A stretch of DNA of 64,000 bases, taken from positions 9,930,698 to 9,994,697 of the forward strand of contig OZ037765.1 in assembly GCA_964035545.1 (NCBI GenBank), written 5' to 3'. Shown here one piece after another: positions 847 to 63,716 of the stretch. The position numbers were made by a program, and so were the translations under genes. Below the pieces are notes generated by a model. That model searched no databases, was not told the DNA's origin, and saw nothing but the letters and a program-made list of their open reading frames with translations. The DNA is from Bugula neritina (Eukaryota > Animalia > Bryozoa). Position 1 is the first letter of the stretch, and every line of letters starts with the position of its first letter.

Positions 847-1754
847 TATGTTTTTATACAGTTTTATACAATTTTGTAGTTGTTTTCTCTATTGTATGTC
901 CAGTTCCTTAGTAACCGCTAGGGCTAGGAGATGCTTTCGATTAAGAAATGAAGTAGATTTTTGCCAAGACCTTACTTTTCTCATATCATAATCATATACA
1001 CATAAAATGCTTTCAATCTCAAGTAGGCCAATTTATGTTAACTTATATTGCTTTAAGATCAAAATCTGACGAAAAGCTACTTTCACCAAACTTTCCTAAT
1101 CAATCGGACTGAATAAATCTTAGACTTATAATAATAAAATTTTCCTATACTTATAGTAATACTATTACCTATTAGTAAAGCTCACTGACACTAACAGTAA
1201 CTTAAACTGTACTACCTAAGCTAATGGCTATAATACTAATAGTAATACTAATAATAAATTATCGCTAGTGTTATGCAAATACTGTAAACTTCTCCAATCA
1301 CAATAACCTATTATTTATTCCCATTCAAGTGAATGTAATTATTTGTGTATGCAATGTCAATAGTAAGTAAACATTATGACAATCGAATGCTGCTGTTCTA
1401 TTAGTTCTATTATTTCTCACAGTAAGTAACTCACAGTCCCTGCAGGCTCAGTATTGCTGCAACTATTGAATACGTGTTTGCTATTGGCTATTGATAATAG
1501 TATTATCGTTGCTCTAAGGTACCATTGCCATTATACTGGACATTGTCATAAGAGCAAGACTTGTGTATACTTGCAGGTTATAGAACTATGATTTTATATC
1601 AATGTGATTATTAGTGCTGAGTTTTTAACAGTTGCTCGCTTGGCAGGGTTCTTTAGTGTCACATTGATCAACGACATCTCTCATATTATAATGTCATATA
1701 GGTATGTAGATGTTAATTATTTACACACATACACTTACAGAAGTTTTACAATCC

Positions 1755-1828
1755 GTATTACTATTAGTATTACGATGTTAGACTTAGTATTACTATTAGT
1801 ATTACAATGTTAGACTTAGTATTACTAT
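1755..1828. repeat. 32-bp tandem repeat (about 2.4 copies) interrupted by the LTR element
   Basis: Unit GTATTACTATTAGTATTAC(G/A)ATGTTAGACTTA at 1755-1786 and 1787-1818. The third partial copy is split at CTAT and resumes after 7089. Confidence 0.8.
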
Positions 1829-2180
1829 TGTAGTGAGTAGTGCAAGTACAAATACAGGAATCGCCCTCTCCCTATTCTTGGAATACTTAGACTCTTATGT
1901 AGCAACCAATTAGCAGCTCCGGAAGATATGCTTCCGAGTCACGTGACACTGCCCGGGTTAATAAGATTATATCACGTTGTTGTAAGCGGAGGCTTGTAGT
2001 AGTAACATGTGTTAGTAGTTGACTCTTGTATAGGATAATTTGATGTGATGTTTGTTTTATGCTTTATTGTGGATAATAAATATAATTACTCGACAGCTAC
2101 CCTAGTAATTGATAACAGAATAACCAGCTAACTATACGCAAGTAAATAACTCACGCTCAGTAGTTGCACAAATTACTACA
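1829..2180 (+). repeat. 5' LTR (352 bp)
   Basis: TG...CA termini; matches 6738-7089 with no difference found by eye; CCAAT 1906-1910, GTCACGTGAC 1938-1947, AATAAA 2075-2080. Confidence 0.97.
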
Positions 2181-2181
2181 G

Positions 2182-2199
2182 TGGTGGCAGCAGTGGGAT
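2182..2199 (+). other. Primer binding site, probably tRNA-Leu
   Basis: TGGTGGCAGCAGTGGGAT lies one base after the LTR and is complementary to a tRNA 3' end ...ATCCCAC(T/C)GCTGCCACCA, as recalled for metazoan tRNA-Leu(AAG/TAG). Confidence 0.8.
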
Positions 2200-2215
2200 C
2201 TTGCGTATAGCAGTC

Positions 2216-3166
2216 ATGGCAGAAGACGGCACGGAGCTACCCATTCCACTGAATGAAGGTGAGAGAGATAATGTTGATATACCTGTGGAACCAGTGGTGT
2301 TAGATGAAGAAGTGAGAATTCTTAGAGAGCATGGTGAAGATAGATATCGGCTGAAGGCGCCCAACTTCACTGGCGAAGAAGCAGTGGAGCAGTTCATCCA
2401 AGAATTCCAGGATGTGACGGAGATTGCAGAATGGCCGCCAAGGGTGGCGTTGCTAAAGCTCAGGATGGCGCTGACGGGCAAAGCTAAGCCGTACGGAGCT
2501 GGACCTGACATAGACGGAATCTTTGCTTCCCTGCGGGCCCGTTTTGGCATCTCTCCCATAGATGCGCGGGCCCGTCTACAGAGGATGCGGCGTGATCCTC
2601 ACACGTCACTAGAAGAGCACGCTGCCACGGTGTACCCATTAGCGCAGATTGCATTCCGCGATCTGCCTCCGGTACACCGTGAGAGGTATACCTATGATGC
2701 CTTCGTGCAGTCCATCAACGACTTGGGGCTCCACCATCAACTCCAAGCGAGGGGAGTCACCACAGTCGAAGATGCACTTGCGGTGGGAGAAGCCTATCTC
2801 TTGGCGACTCATATGCACCGCAACCGCGTGGCCTCCCGCCAGGTGACCACGGAGCACTCTACTGCTCACACCGAATTAAATGCGGAACCCTCCGCGGTGG
2901 CTAGTGTGAACCAGATGTCACTAGCGTCAAAAATCTCACAGATGTCTGACATGCTAGATAAACTGGTCACCACATTAGCCTCCCCAAGCCAGGTAGATAC
3001 TGCCCGTGAGCCTTGCGGGCCGCAGGTACAATCACCAGGCATGGGGCACCATTTCTGCTGGGAATGCGGAAGGCCAGGACATTTCCAGAGAAACTGCCCT
3101 CAACTCCCACCAGGGTTAAACTACCCCGGCCCGCAGATGTTCCCACCTCCTGCGGGCCGTCTGTGA
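2216..3166 (+). CDS. gag: Gag protein (316 aa): capsid-like region plus CCHC zinc knuckle
   Basis: First ATG is at 2216. RYRLKAPNFTGEEAVEQFIQEF...W...L.MALTGKA resembles a retrotransposon capsid start; CWECGRPGHFQRNC is C-x2-C-x4-H-x4-C. Confidence 0.92.
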   Translation: MAEDGTELPIPLNEGERDNVDIPVEPVVLDEEVRILREHGEDRYRLKAPNFTGEEAVEQFIQEFQDVTEIAEWPPRVALLKLRMALTGKAKPYGAGPDIDGIFASLRARFGISPIDARARLQRMRRDPHTSLEEHAATVYPLAQIAFRDLPPVHRERYTYDAFVQSINDLGLHHQLQARGVTTVEDALAVGEAYLLATHMHRNRVASRQVTTEHSTAHTELNAEPSAVASVNQMSLASKISQMSDMLDKLVTTLASPSQVDTAREPCGPQVQSPGMGHHFCWECGRPGHFQRNCPQLPPGLNYPGPQMFPPPAGRL

Positions 3167-3180
3167 ATCACCCAGGGAGG
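3115..3180 (+). promoter_or_regulatory. Putative -1 programmed ribosomal frameshift signal
   Basis: G_TTA_AAC in the Gag frame (3115-3121), a 5-nt spacer, then a perfect 10-bp stem CGGCCCGCAG (3127-3136) / CTGCGGGCCG (3150-3159). ORF2 is in the -1 frame. Confidence 0.75.
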
Positions 3181-5373
3181 CCCGCGCGTCTGTCGCCCCG
3201 CTGGGCGCCGCGCGGAGATGCTGTGAAGTGGCGACCCCCGCGACAAGTAGGCTCAAGCCACTCGCCGCCTGGGTCCTCTACGCCACTCCGGCACCAACAC
3301 GGAGCCGGCAGACGGTTGACCACAGAGCCTGCGAGGGAAACGGTACAAGCGCCGCAAGGCGTACTGCCCCAACCTCGGCAGCTGGTCAATAGTCGCCGCC
3401 AACCGTGGACCCCTCGACCCACAGCGAGGGAGGTGCAACCACGGCACACTCAATTGCAGCCGCACGGAAGTAGCTACTTCCTGCCAGGGAAGTTAGCCGG
3501 CAAGCCTGCCAACTTCCTCCTGGACTCCGGCTGCACCACCAACCTCCTTAGCCGTCAGTTCTTTGACACCCTCAGCGCTAAGGTCAAGGACAGGTTGGCA
3601 CCGTACGAGGGGGATCACGGCACCTTGGCAGACGGGTCGTGCATTCCCTTCTACGGCATTATTGAGCTAACTGGTTACGTCCGTAACCAGGCCATCCAGG
3701 AGACGTTTATCGTCGGGCAGCTCAACGAGGATGCTATCCTCGGGATGCCATTCTTACAACGACACGGTTGTCGCATTGATTTCAGTAAATCTGCGATAAT
3801 CATGGGCGACAAGGAGCTCGCTTGTGTCGATAAGTTTGGTCGTCCTCTAGCGGGAGCAGTGCAGGTAGTACGGAGCTGTACTATACCAGGCCACTCCCGG
3901 GCTACCGTCCGCTGCAAGGTAGACGGTGGCCAAACCTCTAAGTTGGGAGTTGTCGAAAGTACGCACTCGAGAGTCCAACTTGCCCGTAGTTTTAGCCGGC
4001 TCACGGGGCAAGGAGAGATCTCAGTGCAGTGTGTCAACCCCTTCTCAGAGACAGTAGACCTACCACCCAGATCCATGCTGGGTCGCTTCCATCCTGTCCA
4101 GGAGGAAGCCATTGGGCCGTCGTCGGGAGCTACGACGGAAGGTCCTCAACAGAGCCCGTCTCAAGGGCGGAGGACCGTCCCAACCCATGCCTCCCCTCCT
4201 CCAGGGACGCGTGGCTGCACAGGCAACGGGAAGCGCCAGGCTATGGCTAGGTTGCCACATGGGTACAGTGAGGCGTTCAGCCACACAGACCACGGAGCCC
4301 GCCTAAATAGAGCAGGCTGCCGTGAGGTACCGCGGGCGGCGAGGACCGCCCCTGCTCAGCCACTTCAACAGAGGGCTGACACGCCCCCGGAGGCTGCCCA
4401 GAGCCTCCGCGCCAAACCTGTATGGGCTGGTAACGTTAGGGAGCTGCCGAAGCTCCAGGAATGCCTTCCTGGGGTGGTAGCCGACGTGTACCGAGCGAAA
4501 CAGGAGGGGCGACGACCCAGTAGTACACAACGGCGACAGGGATGCGCCGAGTTACGGCTGTACTGTCAACGTTGGAGCTCTCTGCGGGTCGGGCCAGATG
4601 GTCTGCTAACCATGACCTTGGCCACCAACAGCAGACAGCCAGCCAGGAAGAGGGTTGTCTGCCCAGTTGCCATCCGCCGGAAGTTGATACAAGACACTCA
4701 CGAGGAGACTCACGGAGGAGTCCAAGGGGTGGTCACCAAGCTACAACTCCGGTGGTACTGGCCTAACATGGAACGGGATATCCGACGCAGAGTGAGACGG
4801 TGCAAAGTCTGCCAGACCAACAAGCATAGCCGTCTCCCTGGTGAAGTGGGGCGGCAGACGCATTGTGCGAGAAGGTCTCGGCAGGCGGAGACTGTCAACC
4901 TGGCCGGAAACACCTCCATGACACGTCAGGAAGACTTGGCGAGGCGAGAAAGGCCACTTCCGTCCTTGAAAGTGCGCCCACCGCCCCCAACGTCAAGCCT
5001 GCCATCATCACCACTTCCGGAACCAGAAACAGGTCCGGAAGTGCAAAAACCCCCCGTGGGAGGGGCTCCGCAAGGAGATGCCAACATAGGACCAGCACCA
5101 CACACTAGGCAACTTCCAGCGTGTCTCAGAGACTGTGTACGTGACCGCGGTATAAGCGGCAGTAACAAAAGTCTAGAGAGGCCTCGCGTAGGAAAACAGG
5201 CAAAGAGCCGTGGGAGTTGTGATCACCACGAGAATCTCAACTTTTGCCTCGGCGGAATCTCACACGAGATTCATCCGCTGGAAGTGAAAAGCCCTAGTCA
5301 CGTTTCACAACCACGCTGTCCGGCCTTTTCCTATGTTGATGCAGTCGAGAGTAGACGTGCCAGTAAACAGTAA
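3121..5373 (+). CDS. pol: Internally deleted Pol: aspartic protease plus integrase Zn-binding (HHCC) domain; no RT, RNase H or DDE core
   Basis: The frame is open from 3013 to 5373. FLLDSGCTTNLL (DSG at 3523-3531) and DAILGMPFL mark a retropepsin; HEETHGG...WYWPNM...CKVCQ (4699-4812) is an integrase HHCC. No YxDD, RNase H or DD35E motif is visible. Confidence 0.88.
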   Translation, partial: LPRPADVPTSCGPSVNHPGRPARLSPRWAPRGDAVKWRPPRQVGSSHSPPGSSTPLRHQHGAGRRLTTEPARETVQAPQGVLPQPRQLVNSRRQPWTPRPTAREVQPRHTQLQPHGSSYFLPGKLAGKPANFLLDSGCTTNLLSRQFFDTLSAKVKDRLAPYEGDHGTLADGSCIPFYGIIELTGYVRNQAIQETFIVGQLNEDAILGMPFLQRHGCRIDFSKSAIIMGDKELACVDKFGRPLAGAVQVVRSCTIPGHSRATVRCKVDGGQTSKLGVVESTHSRVQLARSFSRLTGQGEISVQCVNPFSETVDLPPRSMLGRFHPVQEEAIGPSSGATTEGPQQSPSQGRRTVPTHASPPPGTRGCTGNGKRQAMARLPHGYSEAFSHTDHGARLNRAGCREVPRAARTAPAQPLQQRADTPPEAAQSLRAKPVWAGNVRELPKLQECLPGVVADVYRAKQEGRRPSSTQRRQGCAELRLYCQRWSSLRVGPDGLLTMTLATNSRQPARKRVVCPVAIRRKLIQDTHEETHGGVQGVVTKLQLRWYWPNMERDIRRRVRRCKVCQTNKHSRLPGEVGRQTHCARRSRQAETVNLAGNTSMTRQEDLARRERPLPSLKVRPPPPTSSLPSSPLPEPETGPEVQKPPVGGAPQGDANIGPAPHTRQLPACLRDCVRDRGISGSNKSLERPRVGKQAKSRGSCDHHENLNFCLGGISHEIHPLEVKSPSHVSQPRCPAFSYVDAVESRRASKQ

Positions 5374-5396
5374 TCAGATACCACTTTCATTCCAAA

Positions 5397-6444
5397 ATGT
5401 CTTACTATTCTGGATCGAAGGGTGAGTTAATTATGTTTTTGGTACGATAACTAGACTGCATCAGTCAGCTACACTAGCTAGCTGGAGATTCGATAATGAT
5501 AAACAGTGGTGGGAATACACGTCGACTTTGATTTTAAATAATCTGTCATAGCGAGTGTGTTCTCCATCAACTATTCATTAGCCTGAATCTCACGAGTGTA
5601 ACTGAACAGAGTACCGGTCAGGCTGTACACGCCGACGGTGTCTCAGTGTATAATCTTTAACACTGCTACTCTTTCAGATCACACTCGAGTGACCACCTCC
5701 CGGTCACGAGACCAGCCAACCTCTCTGTCTATGGAAGAAGAGCCTGTAATGGAGAATGGCATACCAGTAGTACTCCGCCGACGACACCGTTGGGTGTCAA
5801 CCACGACAGAGAGGAGAATTGAAGAAGCCTGGGGACCCAGTGGACCACACCGAACCTGCCAGGTCTGCTTTGAGGAGTGCCCGTCACACCGCTCCTTGCG
5901 TTTACATGTGGATGCCCATTTCCTACTCCACTTCTGTCCCTGCGGCTTCCACGACGTCTACCCGTATCCCGTGACAGTACATAAGCTAAGCTGCTTCGCC
6001 GGAGAGAACCACACTGTTGATGAAGACAGTTTCCCCCTATACCTGGATGCCATCAAACCAGTCATCAGGAAGGCTATTACCCTGGCCGCACTAACGTCAG
6101 GGTTTCACGTACTGATACTATCTGCCCGCCATAAGTCCCCTATGGTTCAGGGCCCGCCTCCTACCCCCGTCAACCCTAGCAACACCCCAGAAGTAGAAGA
6201 AACAACCATATCCCGTATCACGGAGACCCCCGTAACCCCACCAAGACCTAGCCAGCTGGCTAACGTAGAAGAGCGGCTTCTAAGACTGCAAGCCGAGTTC
6301 ACACAACTTGCCCCTGACTTGCTGGATACGACGACAGGTCTATACCAGTTGAAGGACTCAGTGGGACGACTGAAGAGGCGGCTACGGGCCCGACAGGCTC
6401 GACACAGAGCACGGTCGCTACAAGAAGCAGAGTCCAACCAATGA
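5397..6444 (+). CDS. Retroelement ORF3: two zinc fingers, leucine zipper and basic tail; predicted spliced (5397-5421 + 5678-6444, 263 aa); unspliced fallback start ATG 5731
   Basis: The frame is open 5638-6444. CQVC-x12-H-x3-H is followed by CPC-x12-H-x3-C, then heptads L/L/F/L/L/V/L and RLKRRLRARQARHRAR. CAAAATG at 5393-5399, GTGAGT donor at 5422 and CTCTTTCAG acceptor ending at 5677 join in frame. Confidence 0.72.
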
Positions 6445-6726
6445 GAATGCCTGGGGTAGGCACCTTCGTTGAGCTATAGCTCGTTTAGGATATGACGAGC
6501 GCTCCGACATTGGCCCGCGTGCTGGTAAGCACCCTCTCTCTTAATAGCTGACTAGATGTGTGTGATCGATCACCCTGTTGTCTTCTAATGTAAATGTTGT
6601 CGTGTTTAACTATTTCTTTTCTTACTCTTTGTGGGTTTACTTATGAATATTTCCTTTTTGGATTATTGTATGGTTTTTCATTATGTTTTTTTATTGTTGT
6701 GTTATCAGAAAGTAGGGCTTTCTGCT

Positions 6727-6737
6727 GGGGGGGACGG
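6727..6737 (+). other. Polypurine tract
   Basis: GGGGGGGACGG immediately precedes the 3' LTR. Confidence 0.8.
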
Positions 6738-7089
6738 TGTAGTGAGTAGTGCAAGTACAAATACAGGAATCGCCCTCTCCCTATTCTTGGAATACTTAGA
6801 CTCTTATGTAGCAACCAATTAGCAGCTCCGGAAGATATGCTTCCGAGTCACGTGACACTGCCCGGGTTAATAAGATTATATCACGTTGTTGTAAGCGGAG
6901 GCTTGTAGTAGTAACATGTGTTAGTAGTTGACTCTTGTATAGGATAATTTGATGTGATGTTTGTTTTATGCTTTATTGTGGATAATAAATATAATTACTC
7001 GACAGCTACCCTAGTAATTGATAACAGAATAACCAGCTAACTATACGCAAGTAAATAACTCACGCTCAGTAGTTGCACAAATTACTACA
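6738..7089 (+). repeat. 3' LTR (352 bp)
   Basis: Copy of 1829-2180, followed by the TSD CTAT. Confidence 0.97.
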
Positions 7090-7801
7090 CTATTAGTGTT
7101 TTTAGTAGGCCCTATAACTACTATATGATGCATGTATTGGTTATTTCAATTAGAATTTACTGATTCATAATTTAGTTTTTTTTCAACAAATCATTTAAAA
7201 TCTCTCAAAGCAGGTACTTTCTGCAACCACAAATACAGCAGCAAAAATTATTTAAGTTTCATTTGGAAGCTGAAGCTAAAATGTGTTTCTGTAATGGTTC
7301 AATATGGGTTAATTATATTTATGAAAAGAAGGTTTAAATAGTTTAGCTATATAAATATATATTTTAAAAAATTGAGAATGGATTGTACACTCAGCTTATT
7401 ATCATTATGTAATGCTGTAATCCTATTTGAAATGTATGTAGGCAATAACAGTGTAAAAATTAAATTTAAGCTTTGATTACCCACATACCAATATTATTGT
7501 TTTTGCATTTATTTCACATTTGCAGGTATGATCAACCTACTAAAAAAAAAACAAATATATCATCAAAAATTATTCTAATGTTATGCATAATGAGTTAATG
7601 TTGAGTCTCATTAACAATATTAAGTTGGTTATAAAATTATTGGCTTAGTAAAGCTAATGTCATATTTATAGACATGGCCTGTTTTGTTTAAGCCAACTAG
7701 ACTGGTCCAAGCTTGGACTAAATTGATTTTTGCCTAGTTCTGCTTTTAAACTGGTTTTCATCAAACTCACTCCTTTATCTATTCTGTTTGTTCTGTTTCA
7801 G

Positions 7802-7887
7802 TTATAAGCAAGCTACCTGCAAAGCCTCTTCACACACACCTTGAAAAGTACTCATTAGTGTCATTCAGCAAGCCAGTCTGTAAAAGG
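7802..7887 (+). other. Probable non-coding 5' exon of the gene starting at 8991
   Basis: Strong acceptor TTCTGTTTCAG and donor AAG|GTGAGT bound an 86-nt ATG-less segment. The next strong acceptor, TTTTCTTTTAG, lies just before ATG 8991. Confidence 0.5.
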
Positions 7888-8990
7888 TGAGTGAGCCTGG
7901 TATTTAATTAGTTTTATTTATTTTTGTTAAATAATCTTTTTGTTATCAGGAGTTAACAATGAGCAATATTTAGATCAATTTGCTAGTTTCAATTTTACTG
8001 GTAATACCAGGTCACCAACTAGAGCTAAATCAAGATATTGGTGCCAAAATAAAATATAATATTTTGAAAAACAAAACCACATCAATAAAATAAATCTTAC
8101 CCAGTTTTGGTGATACAACTTTATGACACAATACAAACAATTAATTGGGCGACATGTATAAAAGCTTTTTCCTCCTTCTATGAAAAAGTTATGTTTATTG
8201 AGGTCAACAAAATTCTGAAAAAATGCTGCTTCAAATATTTAAGCCTGACCAATATATGTGCAGTATAAGACACAAGCTCAATACACCACATGGTAATTGT
8301 CCCATTCTCTAATGATATATAATAATTATCTGTCGGTGAATAATTTAATAATTTGATATAATATCATTATACTATTGCACATTATTGCCACGTTTAGACC
8401 ATTTTGCAGTAATTAGGTGCAACTTTTGGCTGCCTTTGAATTGTAACTCGGGTTGATGTAAAGTCCACAATAATGCTGATAATGTTTTAATAATAGTTTG
8501 CTAAAAGAAAATTCTTTAATGACTATAAATTTCAAGTAAAACAAAAGATTAGGTGCAATATAACTCTCAACCTTACTTAGTAATTTTATATTACCTAAGC
8601 CACTATGTAGTCCTGTGCATTGTATGCATATTTTGACAAAGTTGAGCTGTGCCACATTCATTATGAAAGCTTCCTCTGAAATTGATCTTATGTCAATATA
8701 TATTTGGTTGCACTTGAACAATTCACACTGAATTATTAAGCAAACTTTATCCATAGAACTTAGTTACTAAGTAGGCGCTCTTTACCCAAATTAGGTATGA
8801 CTGTAATCTACCTGAGGTTGTTACTTGTTACACTGTTTGTTGTAACTGGTGCTTTGAAATGCTTCTAATTTATTTTTTCCAGTTATGGTTGCCTAAAAGG
8901 TAATATGTATGGAGTAGTATAATTTTGTACCTACTTTATAAGTGAATATTTTAAACTGTTTTCTTTTAGTTAGACTGTACTTGCTACGTT

Positions 8991-11900
8991 ATGGGAAACT
9001 CAAATTCTCCATTGAAACGAAGTCGTTCACAGTATGGCAGTCAGAGAAGCGTTGCATTTAGCCTGCCTACAAAATGGGACAGGCACAGCTACGCCTATGA
9101 CCCATCAATAAACAGAAGGCGGCCATCTTCTGCCTCTTCAGTGCACTCATTACCAAGTAAACCTATTCTTAGAAATAACTCCAATGCCAGCTCATTGTAT
9201 TCAGGATATGACGCTGAGTTGAGACAAAGAAGTTTGTCCCGCAGTATGCTCTCACTTCAAAATGTTCATACAAATGAACAGAATAGGCTTCCTGTTTCTA
9301 GGACTACTAGCATGTCCAGTTTACAACAATCCAATAGCATAACTCCTAAAGAATATAGTGACATATACTTAAGAAATGACCTCCGTAGAGTGTTTAGAGC
9401 TCAAGATAGAACAAATTCCGTAGCACAGCTAGGTGATATGGATACTGAATATTTAGACTCTACAGTAAGCCTAGATCAAAAGTTGTTAGCTTTGAAAAAT
9501 CAGAGAAATATGAATTCTAACTTCCCTAGTAGACATCAAGAATCTGAAGATTCCGGAAGAAAGGGAGCAGCACAGCGCCGTATTAGGAGTAGAAAAATGA
9601 AACTTGCGCCATCAGTACCAAATGTTACACAATCACAGACTAATGACTATAGTGTCAACAGACCAACTGGTTTGTATCGTAAAAAGTCAACTTCTGCCCC
9701 TCAGCCTCCTTTACGTGACAAAGCTCAATCGATGCCCTCTTTGACTATACCTGGTTCAGAGTTGGACAGATGGCAAGATGCATCCCAGAGATCGCTAATT
9801 CAGGAAATTGAAGCAGAAATAAAAGCAAGAAAAAACAACTTAAACTCATCAAATGGCAACGGCATAAAAATACCAACACCAGATTATGATTTATCTTCAA
9901 AAAATTCAATAAAACCTAAACCAGCTGTTAAACCCAAGAAAATCAAACCTCCAGCTCCCACCATTCCAGTGAAAAACAAAGAGCTGTCTTTACCAGTTCA
10001 CAAATCAAGAAAAGTTGACAGTGTAGATATTGATGAGAGTATGAATAAAACACAAGTGTTAAGTGTGGCAGTGGATGTTCATACTACTCCTCCCGAATCG
10101 TGGGAAAGTACTGGCAAAGCTTCAATTAGTACCACAGATGAAAGGAACACTACCACGGTAGACACTTGTTCTCAACAGCACTTTATCCCTCGAAAGTTAG
10201 TTGCTATGCCAGCAAAAGAAGTCAAGGAAATAGCTATACAGTACGATGCTCCAGTTGAGATAGCCATTCAATGCAGCGGCAATACTCTGAAAGAAAAGAA
10301 GACTAAAACAGATGTCTCTTCGCCTGATAATTCTTTATCAGAGCTTCTGCAACTTTTTAATGAGGCAATTCAAGCAGGAAAAAAAGAGCCAATAAGTGAA
10401 GATTTTGGTAGAGCTGCTCCTGCTCTTGAGGCTACGGATAATCTATCAGTCAGCAGTGTTAATTCATCTAATAATAAAAACTCTGGTCTGAAAAAGATTG
10501 TTCCTCTACACGAAGTTTTAGCCGATATTCCGGCACCTCCACCTTTGCCTGATTTAAATGTCAAGTTGATACAGACTAGGACGATTACAGAGAATGCTCC
10601 TATTAGTATGGCACCAGCAGAGCCATCTCCAACATCCAGTGCTCCGGAAGATGAATCTCCTCGCGCATTTTCTACCTTCCAGCAAGAACTTCTCAAAGCT
10701 TATAAAAAAATAGAAGAAAAACGTAAAATTTGTCCAACTGAAACTAATTCCAAGTCCTTCCAACGGCAAACATCAAACAGCTCAGCTGAAGCTAGTGTGT
10801 TGAGTGTATATCGCCATGCTCGTACTATTATTGGTGTGCAGACGCCACAAGAATCTGGGTCAGATTCAGGTCACGATGAGCCGTCGGATTGCAGTAACTC
10901 TCACAGCGACCAAACTCCAAGCATACCAGATTTTGTGTTTGCAGGTATTGCTAAAAATCTTCACAGTCATTTCGAGTCACATACTTCAAGGTCATTACAA
11001 AGCTCAGCAAAGAAAGACAAATCCAAGTTTAACAGCATCAAGCGAATAAGACAATCAATCAAAGAATTTGTTTCAACAAAGGCCAGACAGACAGATCTCC
11101 CTGACGATGACGTATGTAGCCAACCACCACTGTACTCTCATGAGAACTGGACACTGTCGGGCCGACCTAAGTCATCTCGTCCTGTCATCATGCAATCTGG
11201 TACATTCTCTCATGGTGAAACATTCAATCCTGCAACAGACAGTTTCGGAAACGCGGATAAGGATGCTCCCAGCAACTCACTTAATATTAAAAGGTGAGCT
11301 TGTGCTATATTGAAACTTCTTTATTGTGTTAGGTTACAGTGTCATAATATAGAAAGTATTATAGCTAGAGCATATCATGTCTTCTATACACATCAATAAT
11401 CTTGAATAGTTTTTCTATAGTGATTTCCATTGAACATGATGCCCGGATAAGCACTCTTCAATACCTCTCTTGTATCCAGCTACTCATACAGGAGATATGT
11501 GGGATTGTAGTTTGTATTCCTCTTGTATGCGTAATAGGAGAAACTAGTTTTATAGTTCATGTTGAAAACTGTTCCTATATCAAGCACAGCCTCACATCTC
11601 TTCTGTCTTTTCATGTCTGAGCTAAAAAAACTGTACACGTGCTTACATATATACATATATACATATACATGTTATAAACATACAAACATATACATATACA
11701 TGCATGAATATATTCATATACGTGCATATATAGTATATACACACACAAACATAAATATATCTACCCATGGACTTATGCTAGGAATTTCCAAAATTGTCAT
11801 TTTGATTGGGTAGCTAAAATATTCTTACAAGCGTGCACAATCATATTATTAATTTAAGTTATAGTTCGGCTATTGAAACTGATTTGCCCAAAATGGTCAA

Positions 11901-15802: not shown

Positions 15803-18800
15803 TTAGGTTTTAATTATTGATTTATTAGTGTTGTTTTTCACATTCTCACAGGATTGCATGCTAGCAATTCTCTTAGCTTCTTCAGTGTAAGTTCGGAGCC
15901 TTAAATCATTGCCAGAGCAAAGCGGATGATTTTTAGCAATGGTTTCTTGGCTTGGCCATTTTTTTAAATTTGCTGTGTTGATTTTAGCTTTGAGACCATC
16001 TTTAGGATACATTAGCATAGGAACGATATTAGTTTCAGTGGCAGTGGTGGTAAGGCCATGATAACCCTTGCCATTCAGTTTCTTGACTGTTCTGGCCCTC
16101 CAGCTATTCGCTGATTGGCATCTGGCTGTGCCAGCAGACTGTACGCGGAATACATGAGCACTTTGAGCACGCTGGGCTGATTTAGCACCTGCTTTTTCTC
16201 TGTTGTCAGCACTACGACCAGAATGGGTTGTACCTCCGCCAGATGTCTTTCCACTTTTTACACTTCGTCCATCTTCTTCAATAGCATGCTCTTTTAAAAA
16301 CTCCGCCATAGTGTCTGATATTCTCATTTTTGTTTTTGTGTCTATGCTAGATGGCGATGACTGGGGTCTGTTTTTCAATATTGGTCTTCGGGCTAAGGTA
16401 TCTTTTACGCTGCTGGGTTTTGAGGGTTTAGGAAACTCGCTGTTCTTTGAATGCTCATAAGGATATGTTGACATAACTTGATTTTTGAGAGCAGAAACTG
16501 TGAGATAGATAAAATCAGGTGTTGGTACTTTACTTCTTATTTGCTTCTTTAGTAGAGCTTTCATATCATGGAGTGATGGGTCTGAACACGATGGTATATC
16601 TGGGTGTTCAAACGCCCAAGACACTCGTCTCTTGTCTAAACCTGGTGGAGCACCATCATTCTCCAGAGAAGTGTGGTCAGGTAATACCGACATTGATGCT
16701 GGCCTTTTCATAGAGCCAGCATCATCTGGGATCATTTCAGGCTCATCTTTCAGGGTTAGGTGTTTGGTTTGAGTAAATTCAGCTTCAGTTGCAGCCTTCA
16801 GCATAGAACCTACACATAACAGTATATAAAACAACTTGTACACACAGAAAGAGAGCATTGATCAACTCATACTGAGGGAGTGTTGCACTGAGTCCATTAA
16901 TATTCAGTCAATATGAATAAAATTCACCAAATCGATTTGTTTACTTAACTGAAGTAACACGAATTTTTAATAATATCAAAACAATAAACCTTATTATGGC
17001 TTTAGCAGTAAATATTTACACTGCCTTGAGATTAAACACAATCTTTAGTAATAGGTTCAGTTCATAATTTATGATAACAATAACTCAGTACTTTCTATAT
17101 CCATAAATAATTCATGCAATTATTCTCCACAGCTTGCCTATTTACGATAAGGCAAAAGCAGAGTGTACAATGAAATCAATCCAAAGGCAATGATCACATG
17201 TGATCAACTGTTTGAGAGAAAATAACTCTAATTCTAGTTTTTGTTATATTATACTTAGGCTTATCACAACAAAATATTTTTAGTTTTTAAACCTCCAATT
17301 GTAGACAACTTTACAAAAATTATGCTAAATAATATTGTCATTATCCTAGTGAGTGAGAGAAGGACGTGGTGTGACAAAATTTGCATTAATTAGCATCCCA
17401 CTGAATAAATATTTTGTTAACAGATATTTCACTTACTTCTAATTTATTTGAAGCATTTTATGGCAATGAAAAATAATGAAGTCATAGTATGTGTTACATT
17501 ACAAATGAACAGACAGGTAAGCAAAGAGCGTACTGAAAAGAGGCAGGTGTAGTAATGGAGAAATTGAGAAAAGCCTGTATTTTTGATGATAAATATAGCA
17601 TTTAAAGAAGTTATGCTCTCACAAGATTTTCAATCTGCACTACCTTTAAAGGGAAATAGTCCACTTACATTTCTCCACTACTGCACTTTATTAGCATAAA
17701 AACAACTTTAATTCACATTTACATCATGAATTAACCAACTTTTAAATACTGAGGTTGGAAAGTATGTTATGATTATACTTTCCAAATAAATAGTGCATAT
17801 ACCTTGAGAAAAAGCACTTTTTGCTGAATGCGCAGATGTGAGACGTGAAAATCTGGGTTTGTTTGTCTTTTTGACCAGCCTAGCATCAGCAGACCCAGTC
17901 CGTGCCATGCGTTGAGCTCGGATGTATGGATAAGAGTAGGTCTTCAGTGGAGTCTCCTGGTACTTTGTGTTGTCTACGAAAGACACCACTTTGTCCGTGG
18001 GTTGGCTGTAGTCCCACTCAATGCTCTCAAATGTCAGCATCAACACGTTGGTTTTTGTGTTTATCGTCATTCTAAAATTTAGAGTTTAAATCATAGCATA
18101 AGAAAGTTTAAAATATTACCCACTGGCAACTATAAACTGTACAAACTTATAGAATAGTTTTAAAATTTTGTGATATTAGTCTTCTTAATTATTTTTAAAT
18201 TAAAACATTGGGAAGCAGGCGAGCATACTGTATGGTATCAAGCTAAACTAGAAGTACATTTATGCTATTTATTGCCAGCAAAATTTTTCTTAGAAATTAT
18301 TATTCCAACTCTAAAATCAGTGAAATTCTATGCCACCAAATGCAAATGATTTTACTTGTGTAAATATTGAGAATAACATTTTTATAGCATTGAAAATAAT
18401 GAACAAGCAGCATAGGAGTACCTGTCGCCAATCGTAGATATGCTGAGGACTGGGTCGCTCTGACTGTTTCCCCTCATAATGCGACAACACTGGCCACTGA
18501 TCATGTTCCATATCCTAACACGGCCATCTTCTGCTCCAGTGATTACCCGAAGGTAAGAAAACTCCATACACAGAACAGGGCTTTAGGAAAAAATATAGTA
18601 ATTTGACATATTGAATAAGAAGAATAAAACTATGCATTTATCATATACTACAACACTCTTCTAATATTGTGCTGGATGTACTTTAAAAAGCTACTATAGT
18701 TTGTGGGAAAATTGTTTTACTAAGCTTATTATCACCATTACGGTATAGACACTTTATAATATTTTTGAATATAGTTTAATTGTATATTTTGCTTATAAAA

Positions 18801-26454: not shown

Positions 26455-63716
<37,262 letters not shown>

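Follow-up and report, generated by a model that had tools for sequence, protein, structure and literature searches.

Among the non-autonomous long terminal repeat (LTR) retrotransposons of plants are the TR-GAG elements of Coffea, Arabidopsis and the Triticeae (PMC13570524), and in sugar beet 28 families with only GAG/PROT and 15 with part of POL are listed (PMC13570524). In the mouse, the IAP 1Δ1 subtype carries a 1.9-kb deletion resulting in a gag-pol fusion protein; it is non-autonomous and is the most active IAP subtype (PMC6466679). The present work describes an element of this kind in a bryozoan, located at positions 1829-7089 of a 64,000-nucleotide stretch of Bugula neritina DNA (assembly GCA_964035545.1, contig OZ037765.1, positions 9,930,698 to 9,994,697 of the forward strand), the whole of which is referred to as the window. 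The element is probably a very recent insertion of a non-autonomous Ty3/Gypsy-type retrotransposon, belonging to a deleted lineage of single origin that relies on the reverse transcriptase (RT) and integrase (IN) of autonomous relatives.

The kind of element is already known, from the plant GAG/PROT families, from IAP 1Δ1 and from the ETn/MusD pair of the mouse. Like the plant GAG or GAG/PROT families, the window element is devoid of RT and IN, keeps a gag (plus protease) open reading frame (ORF) and forms a family; the plant families are thought to be mobilised by autonomous partners and are termed 'semi-autonomous' (PMC13570524). It differs from them in its animal (bryozoan) host, its size of 5.3 kb, the continuity of its frame over both deletion junctions, the constraint on its integrase zinc finger and the presence of a spliced third ORF (ORF3). 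The POL remnants of the plant families are described as decayed (PMC13570524), whereas the frame of the window element is open. An earlier note on this DNA had compared the element to TR-GAG, which stands functionally but not strictly: TR-GAG elements, as cited in PMC13570524, are small, reside in plants and have a GAG ORF without enzymes, while the window element also keeps its protease, H2C2 finger and ORF3, resides in a metazoan and measures 5.26 kb.

The likeness to IAP 1Δ1 lies in an in-frame internal deletion creating a fusion polyprotein, in the need for full-length relatives in trans and in evolutionary success (PMC6466679). IAP 1Δ1 is however an unrelated class II endogenous retrovirus whose deletion takes part of both gag and pol, while here gag and protease are whole and the two deletions are both in pol. 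A cis-acting role of the fusion protein has been shown for IAP (PMC6466679) and is conjecture for the window element. In the ETn/MusD pair a non-autonomous lineage is mobilised by a related coding-competent element having the LTR and terminal signals in common with it; ETn is without coding capacity, in distinction to the window element with its three selected ORFs (PMC6466679). A literature search touching on non-autonomous LTR retrotransposons in Bryozoa found nothing relevant, and no such element seems to have been described before in this phylum.

Anatomy of the element and its two pol deletions

The ends of the element and the signals next to them are as follows; related loci carry the handles L001 to L010 and related proteins a P followed by a number.

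1829-7089: complete LTR element of 5,261 bp, Ty3/Gypsy-type derivative
1825-1828: left target-site duplication CTAT, same four bases at 7090-7093
1829-2180, + strand: 5' LTR of 352 bp with TG..CA ends, AATAAA at 2075-2080, 100% identical to 6738-7089
2182-2200, + strand: primer-binding site (PBS), TGGTGGCAGCAGTGGGATC, one base past the 5' LTR, with a TGG start and putatively complementary to a tRNA 3' end
6701-6737, + strand: conserved block ending in the polypurine tract, 86-92% identical across lineages, present also in L003 and L010
6727-6737, + strand: polypurine tract (PPT), GGGGGGGACGG, abutting the 3' LTR
6738-7089, + strand: 3' LTR of 352 bp, identical to 1829-2180 at 352/352 positions
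7090-7093: right target-site duplication CTAT, matching 1825-1828

Direct LTRs with TG..CA ends, a target-site duplication in the range of 4-6 bp, a PBS by the 5' LTR and a PPT by the 3' LTR are the features of the Ty3/Gypsy group. The order protease-RT-RNase H-IN, also typical of the group, is found in the autonomous-type relative L003/L004 and is reduced to protease and H2C2 in the window copy, which is therefore a derivative of the family and not a complete member. The insertion is very recent. The two LTRs have no differences (0/352; 95% upper bound on divergence 0.85%), and the CpG observed/expected ratio is 0.7-0.9 within the element against 0.15 in the flanking host DNA (compared stretch 7090-8990). 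The G+C content is 50-62% in the element interior against approximately 33% in host sequence, and the contrast in both measures fits a recent arrival. The host DNA beside the element looks strongly CpG-depleted and the element does not.

The LTR start is found only twice in the 64-kb window, corresponding to one copy of the element. It is inserted into a 32-bp tandem repeat (1755-1829; 2.3 copies, 97% matches), the third and last copy of which it cuts; on the right flank the first four bases past the duplication carry on the 32-bp unit, after which the match fades. The PBS presumably resembles the 3' end of a tRNA-Leu, which we take as a lead only. A tRNA scan of the window and ten related loci, made for priming-tRNA candidates, found no tRNA gene.

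The gag gene and the frame derived from pol contain the following features.

2216-3166, + strand: gag, 316 aa, CCHC knuckle at 3056-3097 (Pfam zf-CCHC)
3013-5373, + strand: pol-derived open frame of 786 codons, with pre-protease spacer, protease, post-protease domain, pre-RT remnant, RNase H-integrase linker, H2C2 finger and tail
3115-3159, + strand: putative -1 frameshift signal, composed of the heptamer G_TTA_AAC (3115-3121), a 5-nt spacer and a 10-bp G+C stem (3127-3136 with 3150-3159)
3463-3792, + strand: aspartic protease, LLDSGC at 3517-3534 and ILGMPFL at 3736-3756 (Pfam Asp_protease_2 and gag-asp_proteas)
4213-4359, + strand: pre-RT remnant, ending at deletion junction 1 (4359/4360) and aligning with the start of the RT domain of RT-bearing relatives
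4360-4842, + strand: RNase H-integrase linker and N-terminal H2C2 finger of integrase, HEETH at 4699-4713 and CKVC at 4801-4812, aligning to L003 8209-8684
4888-4930, + strand: first strand of the integrase core and junction 2; ETVNLAG at 4888-4908 with the catalytic Asp changed to Asn, junction 2 at ~4921-4930
4931-5370, + strand: C-terminal Pro-rich pol tail, also downstream of the SH3-like domain in the autonomous-type L003

The two frames overlap by 154 nt, pol being in the -1 frame relative to gag. The count of 786 codons given in the earlier note starts at a TTG inside gag, and translation of pol most likely enters by -1 frameshifting at 3115-3121, as the sequence of the overlap suggests. 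The heptamer G_TTA_AAC is a known slippery sequence, and the signal folds at -27.1 kcal/mol (z = -4.0). Heptamer and stem are retained in L001, L002 (via G-U pairs) and L005, and L008 keeps 9/10 pairs.

The pol frame matches nothing in Pfam other than Integrase_H2C2 at aa 551-606 (E = 1e-14) and an aspartic protease at aa 158-250, the latter with a score under the gathering cut-off. The DSG and ILGMPFL motifs of the protease are intact, and in a sequence search of the PDB residues 152-267 match the retroviral-like aspartic protease 1 (E = 1e-7). In the same database residues 542-613 match PFV integrase at its residues 44-116 only, a part of that protein which surrounds the N-terminal zinc-binding domain and does not come near the catalytic core. 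Every deleted type aligned has kept the four zinc ligands (window, P0001, P0002, P0006, P0010, P0016), and P0002 still has the catalytic Asp at the ETVNLAG position. The stretch ARLPHGYSEAFSHTDHG (4246-4296) aligns to the canonical pre-RT motif of RT-bearing relatives. A tblastn search of the whole 64-kb window in all frames, for which the RT/RNase H, integrase-core and SH3 portions of an autonomous relative were the queries, gave no match better than E = 1.

What is missing becomes evident by comparison with L003/L004, the autonomous-type relative (L003 4543-11923, LTRs 98-99% identical), whose called genes match RVT_1, RT_RNaseH_2, rve and SH3_Tf2-1. Two segments are absent from the window element, both in frame: deletion 1 of ~1.3 kb, equivalent to L003 ~6835-8209 and containing RT and RNase H, and deletion 2 of ~0.9 kb, equivalent to L003 ~8684-9686 and containing the integrase core and the SH3-like domain. 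Otherwise the two are collinear, including the Pro-rich tail, ORF3 and the PPT.

The earlier note had described most of this structure, and its description holds. It had called the element very young, with identical LTRs and intact target-site duplication, PBS and PPT, all of which is seen above, the length of the duplication being corrected to 4 bp. Its statement that RT, RNase H and the integrase core had been lost in frame agrees with the alignment to L003, and that the 786-codon frame is without RT, RNase H or the DDE motif agrees with Pfam and the all-frame tblastn; the domain searches it had proposed find protease and Integrase_H2C2 and neither RT nor rve in this copy. It had placed a decayed pre-RT stretch near 4264, now aligned as ARLPHGYSEAFSHTDHG, running at about 4350-4400 into the linker and HHCC finger, which is junction 1, and had the core ending after ETVNLAG with Asp replaced by Asn, as also found in the alignment with relatives. 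ORF3 (5678-6444) was absent from it.

Relatives and selection on the retained genes

The 786-aa frame, used as a query, has 39 protein matches and gag has 119 homologues, in both cases almost entirely from JGI metagenomes. The loci examined are from two Bugula-associated samples (3300002729 and 3300003318), whose contigs carry the prefix AY690838, the accession of the Bugula neritina mitochondrial genome. These contigs would accordingly stem from the bryozoan host, and none of them appears to be human. The window is metazoan by its dynein heavy chain exons, and the ~99% identical element copies that it has in common with the two samples fit a source in B. neritina or a close relative. L001 and L009 are ~99% identical copies on other contigs, while L002 and L005-L008 have the same architecture at 70-77% DNA identity to the window element. 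Junction 2 and the right edge of junction 1 are common to the window, L001, L002, L005, L006, L007 and L008; at junction 1 exactly 90 bp more are missing from the subfamily of the window and L001 than from L002 and L005-L008. L009 is counted among the copies with shared junctions as well. On the 5' side, where it was compared, the flank of L001 differs from that of the window. At least ten distinct proteins are of the deleted type, in which the pre-RT remnant is followed directly by the linker and zinc finger.

A maximum-likelihood tree was built on the part from protease to pre-RT that the proteins share (34 rows, 297 columns). The RT-bearing proteins all group in a single clade with 99/99 support, from which every protein of the deleted type is excluded, and 0.49 changes per site separate the window element from P0002. 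As part of the explanation favoured here, the deleted lineage probably arose once from the autonomous family and then split into several subfamilies. Other derivatives of the family with internal deletions or rearrangements were each found once (P0012, P0033, P0211, P0261, P0268), in the forms gag-RT/RNase H, RT-end of rve, rve then gag, and deleted types with further losses; these singletons contrast with the proliferating deletion of the window type.

A profile-type locus search of metagenome contigs with the protease-region alignment gave 17 pattern matches, none of them confirmed. A scan for the exact LTR end plus PBS gave 0 matches in metagenome and viral contig collections which evidently do not include the two Bugula samples. 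L009 1-4770 has the order ORF3-LTR-gag-pol, as in a tandem pair sharing one LTR or a collapsed short-read repeat, and L001 1-151, just upstream of the 5' LTR, repeats in inverted orientation a fragment of the element's 3' end, from the PPT region and the LTR start, at 95% identity.

Selection was estimated as the ratio of nonsynonymous to synonymous divergence (dN/dS, NG86, bootstrap intervals), with codons in the window frame taken from the nucleotide alignment. Pairs sharing no tree branch were pooled (window-L002, L006-L008, L005-L007), the value for gag being from one pair (window-L002) and that for ORF3 from two (window-L002, L005-L007). As near-neutral references within the element we use the pre-protease spacer and the pre-RT remnant.

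gag: 0.19 (0.13-0.28)
protease: 0.22 (0.15-0.32)
post-protease domain: 0.39 (0.30-0.54)
linker plus H2C2: 0.48 (0.37-0.64)
tail: 0.65 (0.51-0.88), weak constraint
pre-protease spacer: 0.85 (0.60-1.23)
pre-RT remnant: 0.76 (0.46-1.35), indistinguishable from neutral
ORF3: 0.20 (0.14-0.28)

Gag, protease and ORF3 are thus under purifying selection across the deleted lineages, and the integrase zinc finger is under weaker constraint. The pol-derived frame is open far beyond chance (P <= 0.001): when the observed substitutions were randomly re-placed with number and type kept, 4378-5370 acquired a mean of 6.6 to 7.8 stops and was stop-free in at most 0.1% of trials, while the window, L002 and L008 have none and the only stop of L007 is its frame end near the stop of the window.

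In the same pairs the synonymous divergence (dS) of ORF3 is 2-3 times that of gag and protease (copies L002, L005, L007 and L008 against window 2216-6444). Third-position identity is 65-70% in gag-pol and 43-48% in ORF3, compared to 46-61% identity in the LTR interior and 3' untranslated region (UTR). The high dS of ORF3 and the similar third positions of gag-pol could reflect a recombination mosaic or constrained synonymous sites.

These data also support the claims of the earlier note on the history of the element. It had proposed a long-lived lineage with stop-free remnants instead of a one-off deletion, for which the shared junctions, the copies at 70-77% identity, the 99/99 split of the tree, the open frame and the selection on retained genes all speak. 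Of the comparisons it had suggested, a search for copies with the same junctions in other places finds them on other contigs, with a 5' flank in L001 unlike that of the window, and dN/dS between deleted lineages is 0.19 for gag and 0.22 for protease.

ORF3, its spliced RNA and a structured RNA domain

Downstream of pol the element carries the following features.

2259-5677, + strand: predicted intron of the ORF3 subgenomic RNA, 3,419 nt, GT..AG, phase 1; donor AAG/GTGAGA at 2258/2259, acceptor TTTCAG/AT at 5677/5678
5397-5690, + strand: conserved structured non-coding RNA domain, overlapping the ORF3 acceptor
5678-6444, + strand: ORF3 exon 2, with a C2H2-like finger (CQVC 5857-5868, HVDAH 5905-5919), a second Cys/His cluster, a hydrophobic helix and a C-terminal coiled coil

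ORF3 would be made from a spliced subgenomic RNA using the gag AUG, because the genomic locus L010 (829-2282) carries the exact join: PBS, leader and gag codons 1-14 are followed directly by the ORF3 exon, the frame is kept and the equivalent of window 2259-5677 is removed. The spliced RNA has, on this sequence, apparently been copied back into DNA at least once; the two LTR-like ends of L010 do not match each other. The donor is retained in L001, L002, L005 and L006, and the acceptor in L005, L007, L008 and L003. In avian leukosis/sarcoma viruses the env-type subgenomic mRNA borrows the gag AUG, a donor a few codons into gag being joined in frame to the downstream ORF. The predicted ORF3 protein would likewise start with the first residues of Gag (14 codons, as in L010).

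The likeness to env is restricted to the splicing pattern. For an envelope-type membrane fusion glycoprotein no signal peptide, Pfam match or envelope fold match was found in ORF3, whose AlphaFold model (29 sequences) is of low confidence with a mean pLDDT of 57. Searches were done with exon 2, exon 1 being of only 14 codons: Pfam gave no match, Foldseek against the PDB no match better than E = 0.49, and distant profile matches no informative domains. From its sequence the product looks like a zinc-finger plus coiled-coil protein, with a C-x2-C-x12-H-x3-H finger and a basic end of the coiled coil. ORF3 is also present in the autonomous-type L003, and its family has 142 members, none with a Pfam domain on record. 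The N-terminal zinc-finger domain is matched (E = 1e-37) by P0287 (XP_067940964.1), a 596-aa 'uncharacterized protein' of the bryozoan Watersipora subatra, which could be an element copy or a domesticated gene.

The domain at 5397-5690 is 74-97% identical between lineages, against 46-61% in 3' UTRs and LTR interiors; its conservation exceeds that of ORF3, and the autonomous relative has it too. Its fold has a z of -4.6, and 14 pairs are changed on both sides, compared to 6.9 +/- 2.0 in shuffles and 1-6 in slid controls, in an alignment of six sequences only. Two of its helices pair across the ORF3 acceptor, and the spliced form contains no part of it. The domain would plausibly serve to balance splicing or to package the genomic RNA. 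Rfam had no match on 1500-7400 at E up to 0.1. Within the domain the block 5397-5429 consists of an ATG plus 25 nt followed by GTGAGT, is 85-97% conserved and is in phase with the ORF3 acceptor. It was considered as a mini-exon and downgraded; the exon reading is unproven because no database protein starts in this way and the block forms a conserved hairpin.

Elsewhere in the window, exons of a dynein heavy chain gene extend over 30997-60716 on the + strand, with Pfam matches of the ORFs at 56204 and 60285 to the microtubule-binding stalk and the D6 domain. Large ORFs without annotation are found at 8991-11297 (+ strand, Ser-rich, 768 aa) and at 15803-16858 (- strand).

Proposed mobilisation and alternative explanations

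Having lost its own enzymes and being nevertheless old, diversified and under selection, the lineage would have to spread on enzymes borrowed from complete relatives. L001, L002 and the autonomous-type L003 all have the PBS core GTGGTGGCAGC[AG]GTGG without change. The last LTR bases, the PBS core, the PPT block and the first LTR bases are all conserved from L003 to the window, in contrast to the divergent LTR interiors; this matches what mobilisation in trans by the RT and integrase of a relative requires. In the scheme we favour, two in-frame pol deletions in an autonomous family, still represented in the same host, would have founded the lineage. The element would make Gag, and by -1 frameshifting a Gag-protease-(integrase zinc finger) polyprotein, while ORF3 would come from the spliced RNA starting at the gag AUG. 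The element would package its own unspliced RNA, RT supplied by autonomous relatives would reverse transcribe it from the shared PBS and PPT, and integrase of the same source would act through the shared LTR ends.

Several points weigh against this explanation. Among the relatives retrieved no intact autonomous helper was found: the pol of L003/L004 is broken into at least four ORF pieces and L003/L004 is only ~73% identical to the window element. The gag and ORF3 next in similarity (P0161 at 77% and P0045 at 72%) are encoded on one 10.5-kb contig. The relatives come from short contigs of host-contaminated metagenomes and their bryozoan origin rests on the contig prefix, and the database proteins are ORF calls and as such biased to open copies. 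In the tree, four rows of the deleted group do not reach junction 1 and give no reading of their type, and some deleted copies are decayed (broken gag in L002 and L006, early stops in P0003 and P0004). Only 6 or 7 DNA copies entered the dN/dS estimates, for which NG86 is crude at such divergence, and dS varies 2-3 fold along the element.

The retained coding capacity could be interpreted in more than one way. The element might be a true virological satellite with its own capsid, protease and ORF3, in which the zinc finger, retained throughout the life of the lineage, would dock helper integrase or Pol by multimerising and pull the enzymes into the particles, 5397-5690 being a matched packaging signal; we consider this unlikely, and if true, satellite and helper would be LTR retrotransposons that have long co-evolved as a pair in an animal. 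The remnants of zinc finger and tail may on the other hand be kept as cis signals in RNA or DNA, or to avoid stop-triggered RNA decay, with Gag, protease and ORF3 as the only functional products. Near-neutral ratios of the tail (0.65) and the pre-RT remnant (0.76) fit this reading, as do the Asn in place of the catalytic Asp in the window copy and the third-position identities given above, which hint at constraint at the RNA level. The linker plus H2C2 segment, however, has a ratio below the internal near-neutral segments, and its four zinc ligands are retained in all six deleted types aligned, so that we hold this explanation too to be doubtful.

It is improbable that the coding conservation is itself borrowed, template switching refreshing gag, protease and ORF3 from the helper so that low dN/dS would reflect selection on the latter. 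Recombination is common in retroelements, the elevated dS of ORF3 may indicate a mosaic, and the identity of L009 to the window drops from 99% in the 5' part to only 95-96% in the ORF3 part. From protease to pre-RT, however, deleted and RT-bearing sequences are split by branches of 98/98 and 99/99 with no sign of recent exchange, and the linker, the H2C2 finger and the frame across both junctions are open in the lineages sharing these junctions; the latter could not be copied from a helper, since the helper does not have them. An even smaller chance is given to a dead derivative of a one-off deletion, mobilised once by chance and owing its open frame to youth and G+C-rich composition. The family does include singletons of other architecture (P0033, P0211, P0261, P0268) and the 64-kb window has a single copy, yet junction 2 and the right edge of junction 1 are common to copies only 70-77% identical, at least ten distinct deleted-type proteins are present, the frame is open beyond chance and the retained genes are selected. 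Assembly artefacts at the junctions of the window have a negligible probability, the same junctions being present on contigs assembled independently from two other samples, and no point was found in their favour. Domestication as a host gene was rejected on the basis of the LTRs, the target-site duplication and the multicopy spread.

The favoured explanation, a non-autonomous lineage mobilised by its autonomous relatives, would make this a clean animal case, from the little-studied phylum Bryozoa, of a semi-autonomous LTR retrotransposon lineage that is deeply diversified, has lost all polymerase and integrase activity and is still jumping. Descriptions of such a way of life have so far come chiefly from plants and mice. 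The common junctions, the tree and the per-gene selection with near-neutral internal controls take the evidence beyond a catalogue entry. In genome annotation such elements would be mistaken for degraded Gypsy copies or for 'intact but odd' ones. What the lineage keeps would indicate which functions a parasite of a parasite retains, namely the capsid, the protease, the zinc-finger/coiled-coil ORF3 and, less so, the integrase zinc finger, while the pre-RT remnant decays.

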